Position numbers and translations under genes: made by a program. Below, piece by piece: positions 486 through 47,116 of a stretch of DNA of 64,000 nucleotides. The notes under the pieces were generated by a model. The model was not told the origin of the DNA, did no database searches, and saw nothing but the letters and a program-made list of their open reading frames with translations. How positions within the stretch are numbered: position 1 is the stretch's first letter; every line of letters starts with the position of its first letter. This stretch comes from Diadema antillarum (lineage: Eukaryota): assembly GCF_040938485.1 (NCBI RefSeq), contig NW_027271028.1, positions 434,001-498,000 of the forward strand. The letters are read 5' to 3'.

Positions 486-790
486 AACATGTTCTAATCG
501 TCAGATGTGTATTGATTTAACATTATTAATCGTTAATCTTGTCAGTCTCTTGCAGGTTATTTTGATTGCGTATTTTGCAGCCTCTTGATTTCATTTCTAA
601 ACATTTTGTATTCATCAATCATTTCCCTTTGTCTTGTTGTGTCTGTTTGTTCGTACCCGTGTATGTTTGTATGTGTACGTTCTAGTGTCTCATTTTCTCT
701 ATTTCATGTCTGTGTAATGCAAATGGATAGTACCCGTCATGATGTCTTACAAACGGTTTGCTTTCTTGACTTTTTGTGGCTCTCGTGTAG

Positions 791-922
791 CTGTTCCTGA
801 TGCTCCATCTCGGCCCAAAATCCCACTTGTCTCGGCCCATGAAGCTTTCGTCACCTGGAAGATGAGCAACCCGCCCAAGAAGGATGATCTTGAGGGATAT
901 TTGTTGCAGTGTAGGAAAGCAG
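791..922 (+). CDS. OBSCN: Obscurin-like exon: FN3 N-half (VPDAPSRPKIPLVSAHEAFVTW...GYLLQCRKA)
   Basis: tgtag| acceptor at 789-790; cag|gtcaga donor at 923; FN3 P..P, W and Y pattern; phase 1-1. Confidence 0.85.
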
Positions 923-3900
923 GTCAGAGTTTAGTTGCCTTCTTCTCATCACATCAAGTTTCCATGATACACAATTACATGTATGTATGATTTACAAGCG
1001 GTGAACGTGATCGTGTCTGTACCATACTACGATATATCATTGGTTATGATACCCGATTGTTCAGTCTTCAATTGTCAAAACTTGGATATCAACGACATTC
1101 CACTTATCTTTCAGTTTTGATGTCTTACTTCAATGATTGAAAATTAGATAATAGCTTTCATCACTTTCTTTTTTTCTTCGGCATTGTCAGAGAACAATAC
1201 AATAGTCACAAAAACACAAGCGTGGTACAAGAGTGTAAGAAGCTAGGCTTTCCCTGGTGATGCCTGATTTCTTAGGATGTAAACACCCCAACAATTAGAA
1301 CTCTGTATCAAAGGAATCATTTAACATTCGGACGAGTAAACAACTTCAGCCTTACACGCCTAGCAGTACTTGGTGTTCATGCATCCATTATCCTTTCATG
1401 AAGCTAAAGACCATTCGTAACTAAATATACGTATATATTAATTATCTGTTTAAAAGAAAAAAAATGAATGTACATGTAGAGAATGTGCTTTCTTTTCACA
1501 ATAAAGTGCATTCCGGGAAAGCAGTGGTCTGTTTCACGACAGCCGTATAAGAGACCTTTCCCTCATAAGACACACTTATGAGAGACTTCATAAAATGGAT
1601 TTTACTTCTCTTTGAAAGTCTCTCATAGCTACAAATGAGCGACTTTGGCCATACTGACATTTATGTATAGACTTTTATGTGATGACTTCATGAAACGGAC
1701 CCTAGGACAGGGGTCAGGGAATGCGGCAACATTAAAAGCTATGATGAAGCGCATTATAACGAATTATAGTAAGATTTTGAATATTGAGCATGTGCATATC
1801 AATTTGATTTGATTTGTGTTCGCTACGGAAGTATAACTGACTTACACAGCCAAAGGGACCTATGACTTTATGTCCCTTCCGAAAGACTATAGTTGTTCAT
1901 CTTTTTCAATACAAGTACTGATTCTTGACTAGTTTTTGAAGGTTTGACTAATTATCGTAACAATCATAACGATCCTTACTACACACAGGTGACAAGCAGT
2001 GGCTTGTGGTATCGGACGTGATCAAGGAGTGCAACTTCCATGTTAAGTCATTGAGCCCCGAGAACGAGTACCGCTTTCGTGTGGCATGTCGCAGCCCGCA
2101 CGGCCCCGGGCCGTTCAGCAAATCTTCCGTGCAATTCAAAACACTCCCCGAGGGTAAGTACAGTCTCACACAATGTTTTCAAGAGTTGATTGTACTAGCG
2201 TTTATAAATGCTATATAAGCAATGAACTTTAGAGAGTACTGCAGTATTACTTTACAGGGGTCGCGTCATTTTGGGCGTGTGTGTGTCTTTGTATTTTTGT
2301 GCTTGTGTGTGTGTATGTGGGGGTGTCAAGGGTCAATCCCCCCCCCCCCCCCGTTCGGCGGCCCTTGTTCGAGAGTTAAAGCACAGCTTAACAACTTAAC
2401 GATAAGCCATTTATTTCATTCGAAACAATATATCAAGTTAATTTTTGTTACTATTCATTCAATGTTGTTAATTGCCTGAAACGAAATGGTACATTAATGA
2501 CCCATACTGGACAACCCGTCCTTTTTTTTCTGTCAAAAGATCGATTTCACCTGTATCAAAACTGGTGGAGGGGCGAAGATGACGAGAAAATGCTCACTTT
2601 TTGCACTGCCATCACGATTTCTACTTTTGTTCACCTGCAGGAGCCGAACCTCTCAACATGGAATCGATCACAAAGCTCCAGCATTCAAGAACCAGGTCCT
2701 TGTCGCGAGAGAGGCACAATTCGCGGGACCTGGTCCTCTCGGATCTCATCGACGACGAGGACCTGGGACCACTGGACCTATCTCTCAAGACATCCGTCAT
2801 GCCTCAGAAGATTTACGAGATGCAGGAGGAAATTGGCAGGTGGGATTATTGATAGACTGGTGAATCAATGGATCGATTGATNNNNNNNNNNNNNNNNNNN
2901 NNNNNNNNNNNNNNNNNNNNNNNNNNNNNNNNNNNNNNNNNNNNNNNNNNNNNNNNNNNNNNNNNNNNNNNNNNNNNNNNNNNNNNNNNNNNNNNNNNNN
3001 NNNNNNNNNNNNNNTTTATTGGTTGATTAAATAACTGATTGACTGGCGAATTGAATGAATTGGTCATTCACTTCTTTCCCTATTCCTATTCATACTGATA
3101 TATTCATTGATTGATTGCTTGACTGATCGATGTATCGATTAAATTATTCTTGCAAAAGATATATGTGTTAGTAATCTTGAAAGACTGCTGTCGATCTCTA
3201 CTCGTAGTAATAAGTCAGAACGTTCCCCTTTTTATCCTAATGACAGAGGGCGCTACTCGGTGATAATGCGATGCCGGCGGGCGGCCACATGTAAGGAGTA
3301 CGCTGTGAAGATCTTGGCTTACACGAAGAAGACACAGGACAAGTGCCTAGCCGAGTACGAGCTCCTCAAGGAACTCTCCCACCCACACATCCTCCAGCTT
3401 CGCGATGCCTTCCTCACCAACCGACACGTCATGCTCATCACAGAGCGCTACTACGGCGGCTCCGTGCTCAAGTATCTCACCAAAGACGAATCTTACTCTG
3501 AACCAACCGTCGTCAGGATAGTCGCACAGGTAAACCTCCCTAAAAGCACCTTAAACATGACGTGATGAGGTTCGAGGTACTAACTATTGAGATGATGATA
3601 ACGCCAATGCACCTTTTTGATCTAGACAAGGAACCTAGGTGACCTTATACCAGGTGTCCTTCTCACAGCACATTTTTAGCTTCCTCCAATCTTCTGTACC
3701 TACTATCGATGGAAAAAGTATCGCCAGCGACATGCTGCCTGGCTGCTGCAAACTATATAAAAAGAAATGGCATGAATAGAAGATTTTTGCTCACATTTAG
3801 AAAGATGTAAAATCACAGATGGAAAACCTGTTATGCAGACAATAATATCGCAACTCATAACTAAAAACATGCAAGAAATAAGAAAGAAATTCTATTCTCT

Positions 3901-6900
3901 GCTTAACACCACAGGTGCTATGAAACCGACGTACATACTGCGCTACTTTCGTTTTTTAAAATTCTCATCCTAAATTTGACTTCAAATCAAAAAGGATGTA
4001 AAAGCTTAAGAATCTGCTTCTCAAGCTTTTTAGTATTTGCGTATTTCTACCATGTCTCTTTCAATTTTACTGTTGTCTTAGAGGTTGATGATGTATGGGT
4101 TTACTGTCATCTTTATGTTAATAGCAGGTCGCTGCTACTACTACAAACTGTGACGGAGTTCTGAATAACTCGTCCATTGTTAATTCGGTACCAGTTTTTA
4201 CCACTTACCCTCCTCACCGAATGACGATGATTTCAGATCTTAGACGCCTTGGAGCATTTACACGTGATGAACGTGGTCTACCTCGACCTCCGACACGACA
4301 ACGTCATGATGGAAAGTCGACGGAAAGACGTCGTGCGCCTCATCGACTTCGGGTCGTGTCGCGTGATCAAGAAAGACGGAGGACAAAAGATGAAGAATAT
4401 TGACGTGCTGCCGGAATTCCTGGGTGAGTTAAAAAAAAAAAACAGTCCCGGCCAGTTCATGTTTAGTCTCCTTTTGATGTTAGTTTTCTTGCAAATTCGG
4501 TAGTAATGAATTGTGGTACTGGCGTGGACGCACAGTCGCACAATATAATCGTGTTTAAGTACGTTGATTTCCAACCAGTTGTTCGTAAAATAGAGACTAA
4601 TATACTTTACCCTCTATTTGACATGAAAGAGTTTCACTGAAAATATCTCACCGAGTGTAATCCTTTTGAAATACTTACTTACACCACAGGAATAGATGTA
4701 TTCGAATATACTGCAATTATATAGTTTCAGCCCATAACAGTCATAGCAGTTATTTGAGGAGAAATGACTAATTTTCTAATCTGTACTTGCGCTCATGTCA
4801 AATTTCTATTCCATCCGTCCATTTTTTTTATATTGATAGATATAGGGATAAATAATTAATGAATAAATGGATGGACAATTAGATAGACAGAAAGAAAGAT
4901 ATAAAATTGAATTGATAGATAGGTAGCTTGAAAGAAAAATAGATAAAATGCATATCCTATACATTCATAGTTATGCAGCAAGAACAGAATACATAGATGG
5001 ATAGAGAGATAGATACATGAATATTTTTTCCTGCTTGTCTGTAGCTCCTGAACTGGTGGTAAAAGGAGGGTTAATTGACTACGAGACCGACCTCTGGCCG
5101 TTGGGAGTTATGGTCTTCACGTGGTAAGTTCTTGGAGAGGAAAGACAGAATTACCGTTTAATATGTTTCCACACCGTGTTTCCTCATGGTGCAGCAGACG
5201 ATCAAACGTGATCTTTTAGAGTATTGGCCTAAGAGCATGCCATACTATTACACGTTGTTGTTGTTCTTGTTGTTGTTGTTGTTATTATTATTATTGTTGT
5301 TGTTGTTGTTGTTATTTTGGATTTATTTGGCGTTTATAATTCCCCTAAGCATATTTACGCCAAATCTGTATTTGTAATGTTACTTTCAATTCCCAATGTT
5401 ACCCTACATTATTTTTATTTTATTATGAATAATTCAAAATATGATCTGTAATGTAATTATCAAATAACAGTCTTCCTCACTAGCCTCTCAGTTCGAGTTG
5501 CCCGATCGACCATCGTATTTTTGGGGTGCCAGCCCGGCTCGGTACCTTGAGCAGGCTTCTCAGCAAGGACGGGTCGAGGGGGTACCTCCCTCGAGGTAGT
5601 CATAGTCTTTACTCAAGTCGTTGCCATGCTGTGCTCCTGAATATTTACTCACAAGGTATCATGATTGTACTAAATAAAATGACATGCATTCTCACTCAGT
5701 GGACATGTATTCGAGCTCTATTGGTTACACTGAGCGAGTATATTCTGCCAGACAGTGAATGCTAGATAGTATCTTGTTATTGAAGAAGATTTTTTTTTTC
5801 TGTCCTTAGGTTGAGTGGCATCACTCCCTTCCTGGGTAGAAATCATGAGAAGACGGTGTATAACGTGACCAGAGTGAAGTACAACCTAGCCAGTCTCTTT
5901 CCTAATGTCAGCGAGGAAGCCAAACAATTCGTCCAAGCCATCCTCAAGGAGAAACCCATGTGAGTTNNNNNNNNNNNNNNNNNNNNNNNNNNNNNNNNNN
6001 NNNNNNNNNNNNNNNNNNNNNNNNNNNNNNNNNNNNNNNNNNNNNNNNNNNNNNNNNNNNNNNNNNNNNNNNNNNNNNNNNNNNNNNNNNNNNNNNNNNN
6101 NNNNNNNNNNNNNNNNNNNNNNNNNNNNNNNNNNNNNNNNNNNNNNNNNNNNNNNNNNNTCCTTTCAATATCCTCATCCTCCTTCTCCCCTTGCTTCTCC
6201 TTCGTCATCTTCTTTAATCTCTCATCCTCCATCTCCTTCCCCTATATGTGGGGGCGCTGTGGCATAGTGGATAAGACTAACGACTCCCGATCGAGGACCA
6301 GCCCAGTGCTAACGTCCTTGGGCAAGATGTTTTTACACACCTGACACGTCCTTCTCAACCCAGGTGTATAAATGGGTACTTGCAATGCTAGGGTAATGAC
6401 AATGGTAGGGCCTTCTGGTAGAGCAGTGGTAACACTGTGAAGAGTGAAGAGGCTAACNNNNNNNNNNNNNNNNNNNNNNNNNNNNNNNNNNNNNNNNNNN
6501 NNNNNNNNNNNNNNNNNNNNNNNNNNNNNNNNNNNNNNNNNNNNNNNNNNNNNNNNNNNNNNNNNNNNNNNNNNNNNNNNNNNNNNNNNNNNNNNNTTAT
6601 GATTATTATCATTATCATCTCCTTTGTCTACTTCTTGCTTATCTTCTCATTTTCCTCATCTTTTCATCTTCTTCCTATCTTATTCATCTATCATTCTTGT
6701 CTTCTTGTCTTCCCCACTATTTCTCCTCTTCAATTTCTCCACCTCCCCATGTTTCATCCTCTTTTTTTATCCTATTAATAATAATAATGATAATAATTGA
6801 TATGATTTATATAGCGCCAAATCCAATCTGCAGAGTGCTCTAGGCGCGGAAGGAAGAGAGAGTGAAGGAGATAAAAGACATACAAATATCAAGTACATGT

Positions 6901-7420
6901 AATGAGTAGTCAAATTGAGGCTTTAAACAAGTGAGTTTTTAGACTGCTTTTAAAGGAGTCTGATGAAGAACAATTTTTTTTACGGCTGAAGGTAAGTTAT
7001 TCCATAAGGTGGGAGCAGCATGGTCAAAGGCACGTGTACCCCATAGTGTAGTGAATTTTGGAATTATCAGAGAACCGGAGTTGGATGAGCGTAGAGATCT
7101 AGCAGGGATGTAATTATTACATATATTAACTATTCCTCTTTCCTCCTTGACATGTTCCTGTAGTGTGAGAGGACTGATGTTTTTTTTTTCCTCCATTTCT
7201 CCTTCTTGTTATAAGGGATCGCCCGACGGTAGCGCAGTGTCTTGAGCACGACTGGGTGAAGAGCATCAACCGGCCTGGTGCCGCCCAGTCCCGGTCCTTC
7301 CCGAGTGAGCGACTGGCCACCTACCGCAACAACTACATCCTAAGACAGCAACAAACGTGTACAGCGGACAACGTGACGCTGAGAACGTACGGCAGCGGTG
7401 ATGACGCCGATGAGTCGTAA
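791..7420 (+). CDS. OBSCN: 3' part (8 exons) of an obscurin/SPEG/UNC-89-like giant muscle protein kinase: FN3, linker, kinase 2, tail; 5' part outside the window
   Basis: Exons 791-922, 1989-2153, 2641-2839, 3247-3529, 4237-4423, 5045-5123, 5810-5959 and 7216-7420 all have AG/GT boundaries. Phases chain (1,1,1,2,0,1,2,2) over 1400 nt to TAA at 7418-7420. The motifs EEIGRGRYSVI, YAVK, YLDLRHDN, DFG, EFLAPE and SFPSERL...TLRTY resemble the second kinase of obscurin/SPEG as recalled. OBSCN versus SPEG orthology is not resolved. Confidence 0.85.
1526..1701. mobile_element. Short MITE-like element
   Basis: GGTCTGTTTCACGA (1526-1539) versus the reverse complement of TCATGAAACGGACC (1688-1701): 12/14 match; no clear TSD. 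Confidence 0.45.
1800..1890 (-). mobile_element. SINE 3' fragment
   Basis: gtctttcggaagggacataaagtcataggtccc on the - strand resembles the element at 62455-62700; short (ATCAA)n-like tail. Confidence 0.4.
1989..2153 (+). CDS. OBSCN: Obscurin-like exon: FN3 C-half (DKQWLVV...LSPENEYRFRVACRSPHGPGPFS)
   Basis: cacag| acceptor; gag g|gtaagt donor at 2154; FN3 L.P..EY.FRV.A....G motif. Confidence 0.92.
2641..2839 (+). CDS. OBSCN: Obscurin-like exon: linker and start of kinase (…IYEMQEEIGR)
   Basis: ctgcag| acceptor at 2639-2640; ag|gtggga donor at 2840; phase 1-2 in frame with both neighbours. Confidence 0.9.
3247..3529 (+). CDS. OBSCN: Obscurin-like exon: kinase N-lobe (GRYSVI...YAVK...HPHILQL)
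   Basis: gacag| acceptor; cag|gtaaac donor at 3530; kinase subdomains I-V. Confidence 0.95.
4237..4423 (+). CDS. OBSCN: Obscurin-like exon: catalytic loop and activation segment (YLDLRHDN...DFG...LPEFL)
   Basis: tttcag| acceptor; g|gtgagt donor at 4424. Confidence 0.95.
5045..5123 (+). CDS. OBSCN: Obscurin-like exon: APE...TDLWPLGV
   Basis: ctgtag| acceptor at 5043-5044; tg|gtaagt donor at 5124; kinase subdomains VIII-IX; absent from the ORF track. Confidence 0.93.
5255..5315. repeat. (GTT/ATT)n microsatellite
   Basis: Seen directly. Confidence 0.9.
5810..5959 (+). CDS. OBSCN: Obscurin-like exon: LSGITPFLG...SEEAKQFVQAILKEKP
   Basis: ccttag| acceptor; at|gtgagt donor at 5960; kinase subdomains X-XI. 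Confidence 0.93.
6250..6457 (+). mobile_element. tRNA-derived SINE running into an N gap
   Basis: A-box TGGCATAGTGG at 6260-6270; core tccttgggcaagatgttttta...acccaggtgtataaatgggtac shared with the copy at 60599. Confidence 0.8.
6775..7125 (-). mobile_element. 5'-truncated L2/CR1-group LINE 3' end
   Basis: - strand translation YIPARSLRSSNSGSLIIPKFTTLWGTRAFDHAAPTLWNNLPSAVK is a typical ORF2 C-terminus; (TAT)n tail near 6775-6800. Confidence 0.8.
7216..7420 (+). CDS. OBSCN: Obscurin-like terminal coding exon: DRPTVAQCLEHDWV...SFPSERL...TLRTYGSGDDADES*
   Basis: ttataag| acceptor at 7214-7215; in frame after the phase-2 junction (ATG); kinase end R.T..CL.H.W followed by TAA. Confidence 0.9.
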
Positions 7421-26600: not shown

Positions 26601-28680
26601 CGCGGAATACCTCGCTCCAGTGAAGGCGCTGGTGGCGATGCGTGAGCAGCTGAACAACTGACATGTAGAAGTCGTCAAGAGAACCTGCTTGACATTTAGC
26701 GGGGTCTAAATTTAGAGCAATCCCCGCCCCTTCTTCTGACGTCAGAAACTTCAATAATCGGAAAGAATGATCAGTTAAACAGCAAGGAAACTTTCATGAC
26801 ACAAACATGAGAGAGGAAATGTGTAATTTGGCATGAAAGATGCCTTAAACCTCGAAGCTTGAATCATTGATAGTTCCACAACGGTTCAATTACTTTGATT
26901 CAAGAAAAGTGTTCTTTGTAAAGTGTAAACATTTACCAAAACAAAGGTCAAGATAATACGAATGTTGACAATAAAAAAGATTGCGGAATGGATATGAGAA
27001 AACACTGCGATGGACTAAAAAGTTCAACGACTAAGGGAAAGGACATATTTAAAAGATAAAGAAACAAAGAAAACAATAATTAATAAAAGATAGGAAGGAA
27101 AGACTGCGGGAAAGAAACAGAGGTCAGGTGAACTTTGAGGGAATCAGATATCCGACAGAAGATGGTCGAAAGGACGAGAACTCTAAAAACCGGGTTAGGA
27201 GTTATCAGCCAGAGATACATGTAGGTTAAACAGCCTCTTGTGGCCTTCAGCTCGTCCTCAGACCAGTTCTTTAAGACAGATCGAACAAAGAAAGGATGGA
27301 TGAACTGGGAGAGGCGGCCAGTTGTTTACACCCTCCTTCGAGTGTGCACCAAGTCATCTGTTCCTGCTCTTCAGACACTTAATACGTCTCCCTCGATCTC
27401 CCGGTCCATCTCAGGCCTCCGCTGTGCCCTCCCGTTAAGACATAGGTCATCGGTTGACTGTGTCTGTCTTCCCTTGTTTGTCTGTCTGTTTGTACCTCCC
27501 CCCCCCCTCTCTCTCTCTCTCTCTCTATCTTTCTCTCTCTCACACACACACATACACAACACTATTGTCTCTCTGACAGTTATTTCATTGGATCAAGTCT
27601 TCAATAGAATTCAGCAAATTTGTCAATCAATATACATTAAAAAAAATACGTCGGCTGCGATATTCAATTTCAAAACCGAAGACCTTTGAATATTTGTTGT
27701 TTTTATAATTAATTTTGTAACTAAGGAATTATAAACATATTACTCTACTTCCATTTTTTTCCTGATATCGAAAGTCATAGGGATTTCGAGAGAAAACAGT
27801 AAAAATCGAAAAGCTACTGATTCCACACAGCATAGGGAAATATTTGTATACACAGCCAAACATTTTCCCTGTGGTATACTAAGGAAAGACATTCGTCTTA
27901 CCCGCATCCGCGCTGGGCTGGATTGGTTCTGAGACGGCGCTTGGCTTAGACTTGCCGACGGCGTTGATGCAGCTAACCCTGAACTGGTACTTATTATCGG
28001 AATTCAGGCCTGTGCAGGCATAGCTCGTGCTAAATACGTTGCCGGCGACCACCTTCCACTTTTTGCCGCCGTCTTCGCTGATCTCGACTTCGTAACCGGT
28101 GACGATGCTGCCGCCATCGTACGTAGTTCCAGCCCAGACCAGGTTGATCGTGTCCGACGAGCACTTGGCGGCAAAAGGCTTGTCTGCTGGAGGCTCGGGT
28201 GGCTCTGGGAGAGGTAGGCACCAAAAGAAAGATTACGTAATGACAAGTACAATGACCTTTTGCCCATGATATGATGGTGGCAGACAAATTAAGGACAACA
28301 GTAGAATTAAGGAAATATATCAAAGCCAAATTGAGTTATTTTTTTAAGCTACAGTGCCCGGGATATATATTGATATAGGAGTAAGGAGTGATATGTTCCA
28401 ATTCATATAGCCGGCTAGTTTCACCAAAGGTTACCGAAATAAGCGTTGTAAGACAATGTAGTTGTTCGAGGAGGAGACACACCCATGTTATTAAAAAACA
28501 AACAAACAAACAAACTAAACAAACTAACGCATGTTTGCTCTCATGAAACTTTTTGACTGCAGAAATTTTCGAGTTCACATCCTCGAGTTCACATTTACAT
28601 ACAAGGTTAATTCGGGATTATAACTGTTTTATCAAAAACATTCATAGAGGAAGGAGTTAAAATCACTCACCGGCAGGCAT
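15874..28680 (-). CDS. MYLK: Myosin light chain kinase (MYLK-type), short isoform, 430 aa: FN3, acidic linker, kinase, autoinhibitory/CaM-binding tail
   Basis: Coding segments 28680-28671, 28204-27902, 23735-23706, 22556-22472, 21498-21399, 20882-20779, 20279-20138, 19524-19331, 18537-18385, 17855-17735 and 15924-15874 total 1293 nt with consistent phases. Motifs: GRGKFGTV, AAKFIK, HLDMKPEN, DFG, GTPEFLAPE, KKYIIKRRWQKAFNAVRA. Confidence 0.95.
16507..16887. mobile_element. MITE with 12-bp TIR AGGGTGGTCCAC and 6-bp flanking duplication AATATA
   Basis: Perfect inverted repeats at 16508-16519 and 16875-16886; AATATA at 16501-16506 and 16888-16893; internal GCAACAT repeats. Confidence 0.75.
17391..17710. 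mobile_element. Foldback-like MITE with ~31-bp TIR and inverted arrays of ~15-bp subrepeats
   Basis: AGACCGACACCCACGAGT is perfectly inverted at both ends; CACGAGTCATACAGCC-like units in the left arm are mirrored in the right arm. Confidence 0.75.
17735..17855 (-). CDS. MYLK: MLCK exon DRLTAQNCLDHDWL...SKARLKKYIIKRRWQ (autoinhibitory segment)
   Basis: cgtgcag| acceptor; cag|gtcagt donor; resembles smMLCK SKDRMKKYMARRKWQ. Confidence 0.95.
18385..18537 (-). CDS. MYLK: MLCK exon LSGFSPFMGDNEGET...ISDNAKEFIEKLL
   Basis: attcag| acceptor; ga|gtaagt donor. Confidence 0.96.
19331..19524 (-). CDS. MYLK: MLCK exon PENIL...DFG...GTPEFLAPE...DMWSVGVICYI
   Basis: ttccccag| acceptor; tt|gtaagt donor. 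Confidence 0.97.
20138..20279 (-). CDS. MYLK: MLCK exon VSGGELFDRV...HLDMK
   Basis: ttcttcag| acceptor; aag|gtttgt donor. Confidence 0.95.
20779..20882 (-). CDS. MYLK: MLCK exon VEHEIEIM...HPKLLQLYDAF...MILE
   Basis: ctctcag| acceptor; ta|gtaagt donor. Confidence 0.95.
21399..21498 (-). CDS. MYLK: MLCK exon GKFGTV...AAKFIK
   Basis: ttcaag| acceptor; gag|gtatgt donor; Gly loop and catalytic Lys. Confidence 0.95.
22472..22556 (-). CDS. MYLK: MLCK exon DEAAFEPRDV...YYEIREELGR
   Basis: gtctcag| acceptor; ag|gtaagt donor; phase 1-2. Confidence 0.93.
23003..23385. mobile_element. TTAA-flanked Kolobok-like MITE, copy 1
   Basis: TTAA at 22999-23002 and 23386-23389; termini AGGGACTGTACAGT...ACTGTACACACCCT; similar to copies at 38189 and 51594. 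Confidence 0.8.
23540..23605. repeat. (GTT)n microsatellite
   Basis: Seen directly. Confidence 0.9.
23706..23735 (-). CDS. MYLK: 30-nt acidic linker micro-exon (GDDIDEEEVP)
   Basis: ttcaccacag| acceptor with polypyrimidine tract; cag|gtgagt donor; symmetric phase 1-1. Confidence 0.8.
26640..26750 (-). promoter_or_regulatory. Intronic muscle-type cis-regulatory module (E-boxes, MEF2, GC box, CRE)
   Basis: CAGCTG 26647-26652; CAACTG 26655-26660; MEF2 CTAAATTTAG 26706-26715; GC box 26722-26730; TGACGTCA 26737-26744 inside the 14-bp palindrome TTCTGACGTCAGAA. Confidence 0.55.
27902..28204 (-). CDS. MYLK: MLCK FN3 exon (PPEPPADKP...LVWAGTTYDGGSIVTGY...YQFRVSCINAVGKS)
   Basis: cccag| acceptor; g|gtaaga donor; 303 nt, phase 1-1; YDGGS FN3 like the FN3 preceding the vertebrate MYLK kinase. 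Confidence 0.95.
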
Positions 28681-34432: not shown

Positions 34433-34660
34433 CAGTTGAGGGGAAAAGGAGCCAGTTGATAACGTCGGGCCTTAGCCGAAGTTAGATCCCTTACCTTCGA
34501 CTGAAGCTGACTTCGCGGAGCTCGCTTCGGCTGGTCAGAGATACGGGCAATCCCACAATGCTTTGCGAGCCAGGGATGATGGGAGGAGCTAAAATGGCAG
34601 TCGACGATGTAGTCAAGACGTTACAATAGAGTTTGGAGAGTCTCTCTCCCTGGCTGCGTA
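34433..34660 (-). other. Candidate non-coding (5'UTR) exon of the MLCK locus with two alternative donors
   Basis: GC-richer, ATG-free segment; donors gaag|gtaagg (exon end 34495) and ctg|gtaaga (34433); (CA)n upstream. Confidence 0.45.
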
Positions 34661-39450: not shown

Positions 39451-40625
39451 AAAATCAGATGAACTTATTAGATATCTTGCATCCGACATCGGGCATATTT
39501 TAACAATTTAAAACAAATGTTTCACCAGCACCCTGTCAACGGTGTTTACATAAAAATGAAGAAAATGGTTAATTTGACGACATTTTGTTATCATAGTGAT
39601 TTATCATTAATTCACGCAATTTCACGTGTCTGTCTTATCTGAACTTTTATCAGCAGAAGAAAGTATGTACAGAAAAGCAAGTCTGGTCGAATGTGAATAT
39701 GGATGAAGGTTTGAATTATTGTGGTTCAAAGTGATCAGATAACTGATAGTTTTGTAGGTTTGGATATGTGACTTTACTTTTACACGAAAATAAAATCTGC
39801 ATTTTTACAATACATATGAAGAGTTTTATTGCAAAATGAGCTAAGCGCCATATTTTAACATTTCACAGTAAGTCTATCATCTGATAGAATAAAATGAAAT
39901 CTTTCCAGTAATACCTCACTCGTGATATAAAAAGGAATATTCTAGAAGTTATGATTAAAAATATCTTGTATTTTATTGTTTTCTTTGTTTCGTTAGCAGC
40001 TTTAATCACAAATATCTCAATTTAACAAGAATGGAGTTAGCTGTTTTGCGATAANNNNNNNNNNNNNNNNNNNNNNNNNNNNNNNNNNNNNNNNNNNNNN
40101 NNNNNNNNNNNNNNNNNNNNNNNNNNNNNNNNNNNNNNNNNNNNNNNNNNNNNNNNNNNNNNNNNNNNNNNNNNNNNNNNNNNNNNNNNNNNNNNNNNNN
40201 NNNNNNNNNNNNNNNNNNNNNNNNNNNNNNNNNNNNNNNNNNNNNNNGGGTAGTAATGCATTTTAGTCCGACAGTGCTATTTAATCAAACCAAATTTTCG
40301 ACGCATACACACGTCTTCTTCAGGGTCGGCATGAATAAACAGCACAGTTGGACTAAAATGCATTACTACCCTACAACGTCATCTTTTCTGTACTGGTACC
40401 AACACGCAGACTACAAACATCATATATATATATCATCAAAATAATGCATTGAACCAAGTTCATGCTGTAATCAGCAACAGTTTATCAAGAACACTTGAGA
40501 AAGAGCGAATCGCTCGAAAATGTGTGTGCCGAAATAAACTGTCGGTGATTAGGCCTACAGCATGAACTTGGTTTCAGTTTTATTTTTGATATTATCACAT
40601 CAACACGAGGACAGCTGTATATATG

Positions 40626-40666
<41 letters not shown>

Positions 40667-43238
40667 GTTTGTGTAAGTGTGTATGCGGTTTTGGATATGT
40701 GACTTTACTTTCACATGCATACGAATGCATGTTATAGTATATATATATATATATATATATAAAACATGCGTGTAGGTAAGTGAGTGTACTTTTGTTTTGA
40801 TGGAGAAAACATCTAAATAACTCTCTTTCGTTATAAATCATTTGTTATCACTGGGTTCATTGTAACCATGGTAACAATGAATCATTAAATTCACATCGAC
40901 AGCACACTTTCAACATAAGCACACGCGCGCGCACACAGATACAGGTCCACTAGCACTACAGTAAACGGAGATTGATATCGGAACTCTAACCTTGCTCACA
41001 GTCAACTACAGTATTTGATTGATAATCACAATCTCAGTCAATTTAGATTATGTAACCACATTTCATAGCCAATTTAAATTCTCACTTATCATGATTTTCT
41101 TCCTTTTGTCTTCAAATGGAGTAGATATTACGAGACGCAGTGTGAAATCAATACAAAGCTTTCTTTCATCACAAAATGAAAGGACATAATTGAATACACT
41201 GTATTTGCACGCTTAAATTGATAAAACATGATTTGATCTTATTTTATGTAGGTATAGCCATATGTTTTAAACCAAATTTACCTTTTGACTGTTAAGGTTA
41301 GAAGGTATGAAATAGAATATGCATGAAGGAAGCGGAATATCATATTTACACAGTGACTCAAGGCCTGTTTATTGAATATCACGTCTATCTAAACTTTATT
41401 TTACTATGTGGGGCTCATACAATGGAATATATCTTACAACAACACGAGTGCACGGCCTTGTGTTGTTCAATTCTTTATCCGACATAATATCATAACCATT
41501 ATCAATGATTGTACATCAGTAAATGATTAGAAATACCAAATGTATTAAAAGAATAACTACGATTATGATTGTGGAGTTAATTTCTGAATCTTTAATATCT
41601 GCGTCGCATGACTGCAAGCTATTCTGAAATTAAAAGGTGCTTTAAGATTTAAAGGTTAAAACTGTTTTCATGATATGGGCACACACAATAAAAATTCTTA
41701 ACCAGGAACACAAGATAGATTAGAAAAGAAACAATTGTACTTGTATCGACTATGAATAAAACAAAATCAGCATTAGCTCTTTTCTACCTTCAAAAAATGA
41801 CAACATTAAACGAATGTGGAGATGCAAACCGATTCAACTTTACTCAGGTATTCTACCAGAAATTAATGTACTTTCTCATGCCAATCACCTATTGAGTTGT
41901 AACCATACAAAGAAGGTAACCTATGGTATCAGCTTTGTAATTGCACAATCTCCGTACTCATGCCACAGTATGGGTTAATGTTTGCTTAGACTTGAAATAG
42001 TCGTGATGGATTATTTCATTGCTAATTCATTTTATGTTCAGAAAAACTATCATTGGAACGCAAAGCATTTAATATGTGAAACCAAATAGATTCTCATTTC
42101 TCAATCTAGTCGTCTCCGTCTAGGTTTGAAAACCTGAAAGTATGATTTGTATAGATTCGTACAAACCGACATCTCCTGAAATAAAAAAGTGTAGAAATAA
42201 GAAAAAATCAAATTCTGAACAGACATATAGCTTGCACAAGAACTTTGCAATTTTTACACACATGAACATACTTAAAACATTTGATAGATATTTTCAAACT
42301 TTTGTATCTGACATGGTGAAAATCACATCACGAGTGCTAGCTTCGTGAAATACTGGAAGACATTCGTTTTGTCTTTGTACAAAATACACGTGTCTCCCCA
42401 TTCAATAACCCAGCAAGGCCCTTTAAGACTAACCACGTGGAAATTGGGCGTGGTTCTTCTGGTGTTATTAACGTTGGTATGAATTTCACCTGCCTTACGA
42501 AAGGTAATACCTGTAGTAAATCCATGTGAAGCACCGGTCCCTTCGTAAGCTGAGTAACACACTCGTCAGCCTACTGGACACAAAAATGAAGACACCTCTT
42601 ATCTCTCGTCTGTACAATAGGCACTGAGAATGTATGACATTGTCTTTTTTTTTTCTTTTTGTTTAGAAAGAAAAGTCTAGATATGTGAGACCTTCTCAAA
42701 AATTTTTGTCTGACCATATTTATACTAAACTACCAAGAAGCAGCAAATGTACACGTTTTATCGAGCTCTGAGTGAAATATTATACAAAAGAAAGAAAGTG
42801 AATTGCCATTCTGCGGTCTGGTTGTAAAGTGGTTAGTGTAAATGTGACGCTCAGAGGCTGCTCCCTGAATACAAGATTTTAAAGATACCTGCAGAACTTT
42901 CCAGCACGTGTACATACGAGCATTATCTTAGGATAACATGTAAACAAGTACACACAACCCAGTATTATAGTTCTGTGGTTTGGCTTCATCTCGATCCACG
43001 CTTTGCAAATCTGTAGTTTCTTTCTGAGCGTCACATACATTTGTTAAAGATTTCGTAAGTGGGTGGAATTTGAGAGGGAGGTATGTTCTCCCTAGTGATG
43101 GAATATTACACCATTGCGTGACTCTCAAAATCAATTTGCCAAGCGTGAATACCTATGTCTTTGCGGCTTCCCTTAAAACGAATAACCAACTTGCATTTGT
43201 GTTCCTGTTATGATTAAACCTACTTGGGGGAGGAGAAA

Positions 43239-43612
43239 TTAAGCTTTGTGCTCTGTCTTCTTGATTAGATTGCGTGCGGTGTCTGGGAGTGGCTCGATGA
43301 CTAGATCACCCTCTACTCTCGTTTCCCCGCCTTTTTTGTCTGTGGCAATGCAAATGTACTTCCCGTCGTCTGACATGTTGAGCTCTTGAAAGACGATGGC
43401 GTAGATGCCTGTTTCGGCTGAATCTTCTTGTGTCACTCGAACGCCGTCGAATTTGACTGGGGTTTCTTCGCCGTAGTCGCCTTCTTCGTCGATGACGGCA
43501 TGCTTCCAGACTACGCTCCCGACCTCGGCAGGATTCTCGACCTCTACCTCAAGTCGCTCACCGCTCTCCTCGATGACCTGCGTGGAGTCAGGAAGTGCAC
43601 GAGCGAAGATCA
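43239..43612 (-). CDS. Stop-terminated I-set immunoglobulin-domain exon (telokin-like single Ig)
   Basis: Long pyrimidine tract ending ttccccag| (43613-43614). The reading IFARALPD..V....LEVEV..P...VVW...Y.I......DDGKYICIATDKKGG.......LVI fits the I-set pattern. In-frame TAA at 43241-43239 and no strong internal donor. Confidence 0.85.
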
Positions 43613-44760
43613 CTGGGGAAAAAAGGAGAAGAGAAAATGTGCCATTTGCAAGCTGGTATCACAAGCATAAGTTATATTATATACATAGACATATTCTATT
43701 TCTCTCTCTCTCTCTCTCTCTGCATCATTCCATCTATACACAAACATCCTCACACACACACACACACACACTCGCTTATATATGTATATTGATTATATAT
43801 ATATATATATATATTGAAAGATAAAGAAATTAAAAATAGTGTGTGCATGCAGAAACAGACAGATACGGCCATTTTCATGTACATAAACACAAACAATATA
43901 CATTAACATATGAACACATAATAGGAGAAGAAAATTTCATTATAGCTACTTACAGCTATAATTAAAGCCATGAATATTTTCACTCTTGTCGTTTTTCTTT
44001 CCCCTCATAGTGGGCAAGAGAAAGTTTACACACACTGATTTATTAATGACTTCATATAATTTCTCTGTAACTATTGCAAGATTATAGGCCCTATTGTAAT
44101 TTGCAGTTGTTTTTTATTTAGCAACAAATGAGTTACATGGACACCTGTAAACCCATCTTACACAGTAAATATGCCTGGTTGGGCATCAAATAAAAGAGGG
44201 CACGAGCGACTAATCAGATTTCAGTATCAAAACCATTTTTACCCACGCAAAGAGAATCCAAAACTTTGGAAAATCNNNNNNNNNNNNNNNNNNNNNNNNN
44301 NNNNNNNNNNNNNNNNNNNNNNNNNNNNNNNNNNNNNNNNNNNNNNNNNNNNNNNNNNNNNNNNNNNNNNNNNNNNNNNNNNNNNNNNNNNNNNNNNNNN
44401 NNNNNNNNNNNNNNNNNNNNNNNNNNNNNNNNNNNNNNNNNNNNNNNNNNNNNNNNNNNNTAATAATAATAATAATCAATCATTTCTTCACCGCAGAAAC
44501 TATGTACATCTACAAGTTTTCTACTGCATTGTCCACAAGGGGTGCACTTTATCAACTAAGGTTGGGACAGGCACGGGTAACTCGCTGCATGCGTTTGTAT
44601 GATATTCCAATAGGGTAATTTGAATAGAATCTTGAGCATGGGGTCCAACCCGCAAACGCGTTTGTGCTTTGATTATCACATCGTGAACGAAATATCCACA
44701 AAATCAACCATGAGCTACAGGATGCAAGGCTTTGAGTCTTGGTGATAATATTACAAGATC

Positions 44761-45019
44761 CAGGTGTGAGTTTCTTCAATTTGTCTCCCTATACAAATAA
44801 ATTTGTAGTCGCAATGTGCATCTGTGAATTACCAAACATTTCAAAAAAAGGAACCAGTGGGAAGCGAACCTGTCATGTTATATATATATATATATATATA
44901 TATACTGCTTTCCGGGCAGCGACACTACCACCACGCTGTCCCTGGTTGCCAGCAAGGACACGATGAACATGGAACAAATTTCTTTGTATAGGGAGACAAA
45001 TTGAAGAAACTCACACCTG
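44761..45019. mobile_element. MITE-like element with 46-bp inverted repeats around a (TA)n core
   Basis: 44761-44806 versus 44974-45019, one mismatch. Confidence 0.7.
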
Positions 45020-46804
45020 AACCTTCACCCCGCTGAATGATATCTTTCCTGTATTTAACATTACAAGATATATAAAAGAATCGACATGTCATCGAAACTT
45101 TGACAGCTTTCGACAAGAATCAAAAACATTGAGCGGAAAATAACACGTCATAGATTAAAAAAAAAAAAAACACCACTAGGACAAAGCTATCATTAGTTTT
45201 GTAAACAGCATAGAGCGTAGATAATTCGACAATTGATAATCTGATAATTGACAACCATGGTGATGTAAGGACAGGATCCAGTCGACGCAGAAGGTCGTAT
45301 GTGTGGCTAAGAATACAAGTTCTTTTCACGAGAAAGTAGAGAGAAGCAAAGCAGACCAGAAACATACAAGTCAAATGTTGAGGTGCAAAAGGTTCTTGAC
45401 AATGTGCGCGCTATCGCAACTTCACATTTTGGAAAGATAATGTGACCAAGAGTTGAAATATCATAAATGTGCGAATCAGAATGTTAATCCCAAACCAAAA
45501 ATTAACCTGCAAGGACTGGTATACAAACTTCTTCTTGCTCTCCTCCAAAAAGACACCTGTTCCGCTTTTATAATATTATGACACATGGACACAAATTGGC
45601 ATTCGACACCAAAAGATAGCTATCCTTTGCATAGGGAGTTCGCTTGACAGAATCATACTGATTTATGTATTTCTTTTCATACGACGCCAGAATCAAGTGA
45701 AATAATCACTCGTTGTGACATCTTCGAAGAAACACTGATCAAAACATCCATTAAAGATTATAACAATAAGCAGTAAGCATTACTGCAGCGCGAAAAGACC
45801 GGACCGTGATATTCACTCCTAGATTCAGTGTTGATGGAAAACGCGCGGATCATCATGTCATACGTAATTATGTCAGCTTTCCAACAAAAATCAGTTGATC
45901 AGTCGAAGTGAAATACAAAGCGACATGAGAAAACGAAATACAAAGAAGTTCTTGCAAAGATGTGACATCTGTTTACCAACGTTCAATGACTCAAGAGTTA
46001 TGGGTATATGAAATAATTCAATTTGAATTGATAAGTTCAGTGACCTTTGACCTTTGACCTACGATGACATGAAGACTCAGAGGAATAAAAGCTATTAATC
46101 TTCCATTTCAACTATGAACAAGACACAAGAGTGTTGATGCCTGGAATGGTAGGTGGTGACAAATGGGGAAAATTGAAGGTATTTTGACTAAGAATTCCAA
46201 TATGACAACAGTTGTTCTAAGTACTGGAGCTCGTCCACACAAGTCAGGCGATGGAAACCATAGGCGTGGCAAAGTAAGTACAACTGGTATATTACTCGAA
46301 GAAAATAAATTTCTATATATAAAAAAGTAGGTGACCCTAGTGTTTGCATCTATGTTAAACTTTTTTAAAGAGTAGAATAAATGACGAAGGTATGTAAAAT
46401 CTGAACATTCCAGCTGCGAGCTGAAAGCAACGTGATAGGGAGTGGAAGAGGAAGGCGAATGCCGAAGATCCATAAAAGGAATTCCAGTGAGGGGTCGCGC
46501 ACCCCTCTCGCTCTCCGCCTGCTTTGACCAGATTAATAATCATCCATTCAAATAATCCAAACTGTTCCTTTTAAATACTTTGAAATCGACTCATTGAATC
46601 ATATGCAATATAAGTTTCCACATTTTCTGCGAACAACGTACGATAATGATTTGTTTGGCATAATACGTAGCTAGTCACGGTCAAACCGGAGGGATTATAG
46701 TGAAGATTAAGTTAAGCTCCTAGCGCAAGACGGCACCATGCAGGATCGGCACGCGTGACGAACATGAGAAAATGGTGAGAGGAAAAAATATATAAGCATC
46801 TTAC

Positions 46805-46811
46805 CACTCAT
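46805..46811 (-). CDS. Start-codon segment ATG AGT G of an upstream exon, phase 1, in frame with the Ig exon (MSVIFAR...)
   Basis: Context caaccaaaaATGAGTG|gtaaga with in-frame TAG 16-18 nt upstream of the ATG; strong donor at 46803-46804. Confidence 0.7.
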
Positions 46812-47074
46812 TTTTGGTTGATGTATCTACGGTAATGATCTGCAAAATGAAGAATGTTGAGAGTGAAAATGGGTTTCTCTGCGATCTCCACACGGATTTG
46901 AAGCAAAATCCCGACCGATGGAACTACACTAACCCTTGGTAGAGAGACCGAGACGAGCGGACGGAGTGGCGAACTCAAGTTTGGGCAGACACTCAGTGAT
47001 GGAAATAGGTATGTTGGAGGGCATCAGTCGATCCGACAGCCAGAGAGAGAAGGGAGGAGGGGAGGGAGGCGAGA

Positions 47075-47116
47075 GAAGACTGAAATCTTAACGAAGGTTA
47101 AAGGTCACCTTTATAC
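47075..47116 (-). promoter_or_regulatory. Candidate core promoter: Inr TCAGTC (A at 47081) with TATAAAG about 34 nt upstream; two CCAAT boxes further upstream (47447-47451, 47496-47500)
   Basis: Motifs read directly; followed by a pyrimidine-rich leader that ends in the ATG-AGT-G donor. TATA spacing is slightly longer than canonical. Confidence 0.55.

Follow-up and report, generated by a model that had tools for sequence, protein, structure and literature searches.

Is a single-domain immunoglobulin (Ig) protein encoded upstream of a myosin light-chain kinase (MLCK) gene a product of the kinase gene, as telokin is in vertebrates, or does it come from a gene of its own? The question is raised by a 64,000-nucleotide (nt) stretch of the sea urchin Diadema antillarum (contig NW_027271028.1, positions 434,001 to 498,000), referred to here as the window. 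An initial annotation of this DNA, made from the sequence alone, had proposed that one locus makes a free-standing, telokin-like Ig protein of 126 amino acids (aa) from the 5′ side of the kinase. The reading favoured here, with moderate confidence, is that of an independent, signal-less Ig gene arranged head-to-tail with an MLCK-type kinase gene that has no Ig domains itself, the Ig protein being an intracellular module. Positions are those of the window, and a slash within a motif marks an exon-intron boundary.

The Ig gene lies on the minus strand and consists of two exons, with a spliced coding sequence (CDS) of 381 nt that runs from an ATG at 46811-46809 to a TAA at 43241-43239 and is translated into 126 aa. 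The phase-1 join of 46805 to 43612 that had been predicted is exact to the base: RefSeq lists the same protein, at 100% identity, as an "uncharacterized protein" of Diadema antillarum, and orthologue mRNAs are joined at the matching position, their blastn alignment to the window breaking exactly at 46805. The acceptor, ttttttccccag, a strong one rich in pyrimidines, lies directly 5′ of 43612. Orthologues of 126 aa occur in five further species, with annotated examples in D. setosum, Strongylocentrotus purpuratus (LOC754388), Lytechinus pictus and L. variegatus, and the gene is annotated in six species overall; run and metatranscriptome assemblies provide additional versions of 126-127 aa. For none of the five loci read does the record contain a product longer than 126 aa. 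The position, phase and GTAAG donor of the intron are the same in four genomes, its length being 2575-3051 nt in S. purpuratus, L. pictus and L. variegatus. The run of N within the Diadema intron is wholly intronic and touches no codon. Because the gene spans 3573 nt in the public record of this contig, just as it does in the window (46811-43239), and the DNA on both sides of the intron aligns 100% to this record with zero offset, the intron is continuous across the N run.

Several orthologue contigs are mRNAs, with an intronless CDS, a 5′ untranslated region (5′UTR) of ~190 nt and a 3′UTR of ~1.9 kb. One of these (L003) contains the Ig open reading frame (ORF) as its sole content and terminates in AATAAA and poly(A). 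Orthologue mRNA is collinear with the S. purpuratus genome from the Ig exon into the 3′UTR, which makes the Ig exon a terminal exon, and two AATAAA hexamers of the window (41400-41395 and 41373-41368) fit the orthologue 3′UTR length. ORFs of 160-168 aa in the 3′UTR of two orthologue mRNAs were rejected as spurious, being mutually dissimilar and containing stops. The stop codon and the C-terminal tail are invariant or nearly so among the orthologues. Pairwise ratios of nonsynonymous to synonymous substitution (dN/dS) of the Ig CDS are 0.07-0.27, and over the C-terminal 19 codons dN is 0-0.11 against a dS of 0.17-1.0 in all pairs except the near-identical Lytechinus pair. The conserved stop and the dN/dS below one that the initial annotation had called for are thus both present. 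Splicing past the Ig exon, lack of expression and a recent disabling stop, which it had named as fatal to the idea, are contradicted by the orthologue poly(A) mRNAs and by the conserved stop and tail. The Ig gene is an independent two-exon protein-coding gene of sea urchins under purifying selection. It is already annotated yet appears unstudied: a literature search on LOC754388, XP_001178994, A0A7M7FZS8 and a sea-urchin telokin-like protein found no paper.

Transcription of the gene would start from a promoter of the TATA/initiator type. An initiator-like TCAGTC, with its A at 47081, is located 34 nt 3′ of a TATAAA box. The A/T-rich box and the invariant blocks that flank it align in D. antillarum, S. 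purpuratus, L. variegatus and L. pictus, so the promoter candidate pointed out earlier lies in a region conserved in four species. The 5′ ends of orthologue mRNA contigs align to ~47060, just 3′ of the core promoter. The predicted mRNA would measure ~2.4 kb, with a 5′UTR of ~270 nt, the 381-nt ORF and a 3′UTR of ~1.85 kb.

Further features of the Ig locus were observed alongside. An upstream ATG at ~47023 (minus strand) of the 5′UTR, embedded in an invariant TGATG, is conserved in four species; the ORF that it opens is not conserved, comprising 31 codons in Diadema vs. 7 in camarodonts. This ATG could be either a conserved DNA element or an upstream start codon that dampens translation. Within Ig codons 19-21, a donor-like GCG/GTGAG in phase 1 (43557-43549, minus strand) is identical in all seven species, perhaps for no other reason than the invariant Gly20-Glu21; splicing from it would fuse codons 1-19 in frame to the FN3 exon of the kinase gene. 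Synonymous sites are almost invariant in seven species over the last ten Ig codons (43268-43239; AAT CTA ATC ... GAG CAC AAA GCY TAA), in contrast to a whole-gene dS of ~1, and there may be an additional constraint at the RNA level near the stop codon. As to the assembly, two other N runs (40055-40247 and 50588-50728) are flanked on either side by DNA that aligns 100% to the public record without coordinate offset, and are therefore true-length stretches, not placeholders for gaps of undefined size. Two contigs of GCA_040938485.1 carry the locus, JBFRCO010000140.1 (the contig of the window) and JBFRCO010000014.1. Most of the flank compared, coding and non-coding, is 96-99.8% identical between them, with one 0.8-kb piece at 92%. 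Judged by these identities, the two look like haplotypes that were assembled separately rather than a gene duplication, which accounts for the two RefSeq accessions for one Ig protein.

The protein is a single Ig-type β-sandwich and has no signal peptide. It has a mass of 13.9 kDa and an isoelectric point of 4.4, with 28 acidic and 13 basic residues and a single Cys (C90). Trp38 of strand C and the motif D-D-G-K-Y-x-C, with Asp84, Gly86, Tyr88 and Cys90, are invariant in seven orthologues, and the chain ends in an invariant basic tail of 17 residues rich in Lys, Arg and His. The AlphaFold2 model contains seven strands between residues 21 and 106, with a predicted local distance difference test (pLDDT) score of ~76-87 in the core and a mean of 68; residues 1-19 and 113-126, modelled as an N-terminal strand and a C-terminal helix, are not confidently placed. 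The acidic insert that had been noticed after the Trp corresponds to a long C-C′ hairpin in this model. Foldseek assigns a probability of 1.0 to matches with Ig domains, VIA-align gives Z values of ~11 over ~100 residues, and the language-model neighbours of the protein are all I-set clusters. All seven orthologues match the Pfam I-set family (PF07679) at E ≤ 0.01, the best at 8.3e-6, but the protein of the window scores 19.8 bits, under the cut-off of 23.7 bits, and three of the seven also match V-set. The earlier assignment to an I-set domain stands as regards the Ig fold and the orthologue matches, whereas subtype I vs. V is not settled.

Fold searches (Foldseek against the PDB and Swiss-Prot models, VIA-align) retrieve Ig domains of every kind, V-type first, with shark VNAR, T-cell receptor V and embigin at the top; telokin, MLCK1 Ig3 and titin M10 sit among the matches. 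These V-type structural matches and the V-set hits would suit a secreted or membrane-associated V-like Ig that acquires its signal peptide from an unannotated upstream exon or leaves the cell by unconventional export. Such a protein is highly improbable, since all orthologue mRNAs open the ORF at Met-Ser-Val with a 5′UTR collinear with genomic exon 1, and in Diadema the ORF table places an in-frame TAG 15 nt 5′ of the ATG. Moreover, no hydrophobic leader or segment is found anywhere in the protein (maximum Kyte-Doolittle value over 9 residues, 1.7), and the canonical B-F disulfide is absent, the position of the B-strand Cys being occupied by an invariant Val25 while Cys90 of the F strand is kept. 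This disulfide is typical of extracellular Ig domains and is not required in intracellular ones. The lack of both signal peptide and B-strand Cys had been read correctly at the outset. Given the missing hydrophobic leader, an A strand that begins at residue 3 and Val25 in place of the B-strand Cys, the protein would be expected to stay in the cytoplasm or nucleus, where it could serve as a free protein-binding Ig module.

The relatives of this module were sought with a family profile run against 1.84 billion representatives. The profile recovers its own cluster at 251 bits and the other members at ≥ 223 bits per domain. After re-scoring per domain, nothing outside the family exceeds 23 bits; the non-family matches are multi-Ig giants, whose best single domain reaches ≤ 23 bits over half of the domain. 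Among PDB sequences the profile finds pIgR (37 bits), Dscam (34.5 bits) and telokin (16 bits, E = 0.095). By these scores, the family looks restricted to sea urchins, or diverged past recognition elsewhere.

The Ig gene is located 14.6 kb 5′ of the ATG of a kinase gene on the same strand. The model of the latter, built by hand by chaining GT/AG-bounded exons, encodes 430 aa that comprise Met-Pro-Ala, an FN3 domain, an acidic linker, a kinase domain and a basic segment of the calmodulin-binding type, with no Ig domain. The kinase exons match Pkinase above cut-off, and the best solved match is MYLK4 (81 bits, E = 2.4e-22), with twitchin (62.6 bits) and DAPK1 (60 bits) behind it. The segment ...KKYIIKRRWQ-KAFNAVRAMIRV... 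appears to resemble the regulatory segment of vertebrate MLCK; the exon with the first part of the calmodulin-binding-type segment (17860-17672) gave no match against PDB sequences. A search with the FN3 exon, meant to recover kinase transcript fragments and with them the part N-terminal of FN3, brought up only ORF calls on genomic contigs. Throughout the 64-kb window no other ORF carries the Ig core motif. The Ig gene of S. purpuratus and L. variegatus is followed on its own strand, at a distance of 9.7-9.9 kb from the stop codon, by a gene for a product of 429/430 aa that has fn3 and Pkinase domains but lacks Ig. On the evidence of its predicted exons, the neighbouring gene is an MLCK-type FN3-kinase without an Ig domain, its kinase domain being of the CaMK group and preceded by FN3 as in smooth-muscle/non-muscle MLCK. 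The expectation of a free-standing Ig gene 5′ of an MLCK-type kinase on the same strand was therefore sound, and the kinase can be specified as an FN3-kinase.

Whether the two coding regions form one gene or two is decided by the start of the kinase product. Its initiator mini-exon lies 476 nt 5′ of the FN3 exon and is conserved in Diadema, S. purpuratus and L. variegatus. In the latter two species the first coding exon of the kinase, ATGCCTGCTG/GTAAGT, is likewise preceded by an acceptor and is orthologous to 28680-28671. A conserved non-coding block with an invariant donor at 34433, ~5.8 kb 5′ of the mini-exon, probably represents, from its conservation and collinearity, the promoter of the MLCK-type gene together with a non-coding first exon. 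At the other end of the interval, the Ig domain does not finish in a conserved phase-1 donor: Diadema alone has GGT for Gly104. Use of this codon as a donor (G/GTGAT in Diadema) to fuse Ig to FN3 was considered and rejected, the codon being GGC in the six other species. The kinase's own ATG exon and the non-conserved Gly104 donor imply two separate genes in a conserved tandem. In RefSeq, too, the Ig gene is a locus of its own, with a separate entry for the kinase gene in S. purpuratus and L. variegatus. On sequence grounds the Ig and kinase genes are separate, and the notion of a single locus that makes the Ig protein has to be given up in view of the mini-exon, the conserved upstream block and the separate RefSeq loci.

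All junctions concerned (Ig exon 1, Ig exon 2 and FN3) are in phase 1, and an arrangement can be envisaged in which Ig-only and FN3-kinase mRNAs are alternative products of one unit, with a shared start exon (46811-46805) and the Ig exon as an alternative terminal exon. Exon 1 ends and FN3 begins in phase 1, a join of 46805 to 28204 reads Met-Ser-Glu-Pro-Pro in frame, and the two genes share a strand with no gene called between them. Ig and FN3 exons are, however, phase-1 compatible as a rule. The kinase starts from a conserved ATG mini-exon of its own, with an acceptor before it, and the conserved block 5.8 kb further 5′, with its invariant donor, is what would be expected of the kinase's own first exon. 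Splicing of exon 1 to this mini-exon leads to a stop in S. purpuratus and to a frameshift in Diadema. The records, which hold only the longest product per gene, give 126 aa for the Ig gene and 429/430 aa for the next. Finally, a degenerate pattern for the 42-nt 3′ end of exon 1 retrieved only the known Ig mRNA contig from public metagenome and metatranscriptome contigs, which is weak evidence. A start exon shared by Ig and kinase products is thus unlikely, and we give the arrangement as a whole only a small chance.

The two-gene tandem, with the same-strand order from Ig gene to FN3-kinase gene, is found in D. antillarum, S. purpuratus and L. variegatus and is common to Diadematoida and Camarodonta. 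In vertebrate smooth-muscle MLCK and Drosophila Strn-Mlck, Ig domains flank the FN3-kinase. The position of the gene, together with a kinase that lacks the Ig domains flanking FN3-kinase elsewhere, leads to the suggestion that the Ig protein acts on the actomyosin/MLCK system, by analogy with telokin, APEG-1 or stretchin; this role is a real possibility that falls somewhat short of an even chance. The Ig gene may also have arisen by fission of an ancestral Ig-FN3-kinase gene, an origin that ranges from doubtful to, at the most favourable, evenly balanced. In such an event an ancestral Ig exon would have gained its own promoter, a start mini-exon, a read-through tail and a poly(A) site, and the C-terminal tail of the Ig protein would represent read-through into a former intron. 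The most specific version, in which a split of the MLCK gene predates the divergence of Diadematoida and Camarodonta and the free 14-kDa Ig acts in trans on myosin II or on the Ig-less kinase, is unlikely to hold in full. If it did, gene fission would join the internal promoters of telokin (3′) and APEG-1 (5′) as a third, independent way of obtaining a kinase-free Ig regulator.

Several observations weigh against the reading favoured here. Conserved adjacency by itself says little about a common function or origin. Beyond sea urchins no orthologue was detected, which leaves fission without outgroup support. Profile searches revealed no specific similarity to any MLCK, telokin or titin Ig, and among the structural neighbours V-type extracellular Ig domains are as prominent as the I-set domains of muscle. 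In addition, the tail of the protein is basic, unlike the acidic tail of telokin. The missing similarity to MLCK-family Ig domains and the generic fold neighbours would equally fit an Ig gene unrelated to the kinase in origin and function, linked to it as a bystander of slow rearrangement or of a shared regulatory landscape, and with another intracellular partner, for example in the nucleus. The basic KKKEHK-type tail could serve as a nuclear or nucleic-acid contact, and a nuclear partner has reportedly been suggested for APEG-1. Moreover, the Ig mRNA recurs in marine metatranscriptome and run assemblies, and kinase sequence is not on the same contigs. On the other hand, signal-less Ig domains are concentrated in cytoskeletal and muscle proteins of the titin/MLCK group, and the gene order mirrors the canonical Ig-FN3-kinase domain order on one strand from Diadematoida to Camarodonta, next to a kinase without any Ig. 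This independent origin and function is a substantial alternative, although we consider it the less probable account, and a function unrelated to the kinase is nearly as likely as an actomyosin role. An intracellular Ig module encoded by a separate gene in tandem with the Ig-less kinase gene is still the preferred reading.

The features of the two genes are collected in Table 1.

Table 1. Positions of the Ig gene and the neighbouring FN3-kinase gene in the window
Feature	Position	Strand	Details and basis
TATAAA box, Ig core promoter	47110..47115	-	sequence and four-species alignment
Ig exon 1	46805..47081	-	~270 nt 5′UTR and ATG AGT G; donor G/gtaaga after 46805; 5′ end approximate
Ig intron (sole intron)	43613..46804	-	phase 1, 3192 nt; contains N run 44276-44460
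Ig exon 2, coding part	43239..43612	-	Ig domain (residues ~3-110), conserved basic tail, TAA
Ig predicted 3′UTR, ~1.85 kb	41350..43238	-	end approximate, inferred from AATAAA hexamers and orthologue 3′UTR length
Conserved non-coding block ending in invariant CTG/GTAAG	34433..34600	-	four-species alignment, collinear blastn blocks
Kinase initiator mini-exon, ATGCCTGCCG/gtgagt	28671..28680	-	Met-Pro-Ala, phase 1; acceptor ttcttctag precedes
FN3 exon	27902..28204	-	phase 1 to phase 1; Pfam fn3 E = 6.5e-13, above cut-off
Remaining kinase-gene exons (hand-built model): 23735-23706, 22556-22472, 21498-21399, 20882-20779, 20279-20138, 19524-19331, 18537-18385, 17855-17735, 15924-15874	15874..23735	-	uninterrupted ORF, GT/AG at every junction

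Around the MLCK-type gene, two non-coding stretches (35431-35343 and 34600-34136, minus strand) are conserved and collinear in Diadema, S. purpuratus and both Lytechinus species. A second element, nearly invariant, TATTTGGAAT ... GAGAAACCATATATCTACT, is situated 3′ of the donor at 34433 and could, from its conservation and position, be an intronic enhancer of the kinase gene. CRE/MEF2-like motifs (TGACGTCA and CTAAATTTAG) are present at 26394-26760 (minus strand), where the 430-aa kinase model uses no exon. At 700-7400 of the window, a second gene with FN3 and kinase exons is encoded on the plus strand, convergent to the MLCK-type gene, with FN3-like exons at ~718-987 and 1970-2215 and kinase exons at ~3242-3562, 4231-4500, 5784-5960 and 7178-7417. 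In place of HRDLKPEN, the catalytic loop has LDLRHDN; GRYSV forms the glycine loop, and DFG is intact. Among solved structures, the best matches (CDPK, CaMK4 and DAPK) reach only 1e-10 to 1e-12. By these residues the product may be an atypical kinase or a pseudokinase.

Should the link with the kinase be true, sea urchins would present a natural separation of the Ig module of MLCK from its catalytic part and a case of convergent evolution of kinase-free Ig regulators. A 126-aa protein and a 430-aa Ig-less kinase would then form a simple system in which to probe the function of a stand-alone MLCK-family Ig domain, in animals that offer classic cytokinesis and smooth-muscle assays. Should the link be false, the gene would be one more lineage-restricted, uncharacterised Ig-domain gene already in RefSeq.

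Telokin, also called kinase-related protein, is the C-terminal Ig domain of MLCK itself, transcribed from an internal promoter in the 3′ portion of the gene; it has an acidic C-terminal tail and binds unphosphorylated smooth-muscle myosin. Like telokin, the sea-urchin protein is a small, acidic, free single Ig at an MLCK locus, presumably cytoplasmic, and its model aligns with telokin in Foldseek at 25% identity with a template-modelling (TM) score, by target, of 0.67-0.69. In contrast to telokin, it is encoded 5′ of the kinase's own start exon and is never part of the annotated kinase, which itself has no C-terminal Ig; its tail is basic, and its profile match to telokin (E = 0.095) is weaker than that to many unrelated Ig domains. 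The epithet "telokin-like" finds no specific support in sequence or fold, the nearest structures being V-type, and is best retained as an analogy.

The arrangement had also been thought to be without precedent, but earlier cases exist in stretchin-klp (PMC7391215) and in APEG-1/SPEG (PMC1352370, PMC8199188). Drosophila stretchin-klp is a kinase-free Ig product of the 5′ part of Strn-Mlck that decorates myosin thick filaments (PMC7391215). As in the sea urchin, a kinase-free Ig is encoded 5′ of an MLCK-family kinase. However, stretchin is a multi-Ig protein of ~215 kDa with five Ig-Ig repeats, and its single complex gene is predicted to give several transcripts, whereas the 14-kDa sea-urchin protein is one domain with a gene to itself. 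The nearest precedent is APEG-1 (aortic preferentially expressed protein 1) rather than telokin: a kinase-free single Ig of 12.7 kDa made from its own promoter within SPEG, a vertebrate gene of the MLCK family (PMC1352370, PMC8199188). Both are single Ig proteins without a signal peptide, transcribed from their own promoter 5′ of the kinase domains, and both combine a hydrophobic B-strand residue with a retained F-strand Cys, the pattern in APEG-1 being I41/C93 (PMC1352370).

APEG-1 differs in that its Ig exons are shared with long SPEG kinase isoforms and its promoter lies between exons of a larger frame, whereas the sea-urchin Ig exon is outside the annotated kinase product and belongs to a separate gene. 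No Ig exon shared with a kinase isoform was found at this locus, where the end of the Ig domain has no conserved phase-1 donor, the annotated kinase products are Ig-less and orthologue mRNAs carry poly(A) after the Ig exon, although rare shared Ig-kinase isoforms are conceivable. Furthermore, APEG-1 is 33% identical to telokin (PMC1352370), while the sea-urchin Ig exhibits generic Ig similarity only, and the neighbouring kinase is of the MLCK type (calmodulin-binding segment, closest to MYLK4) rather than the SPEG type. The sea-urchin protein therefore lacks the defining features of both telokin and an APEG-1-type shared-exon product, and may, by analogy, be an Ig-fold protein that works like them. 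With an evolutionary link to its Ig-less MLCK neighbour that is suggestive though unproven, the gene joins the small free intracellular Ig proteins.

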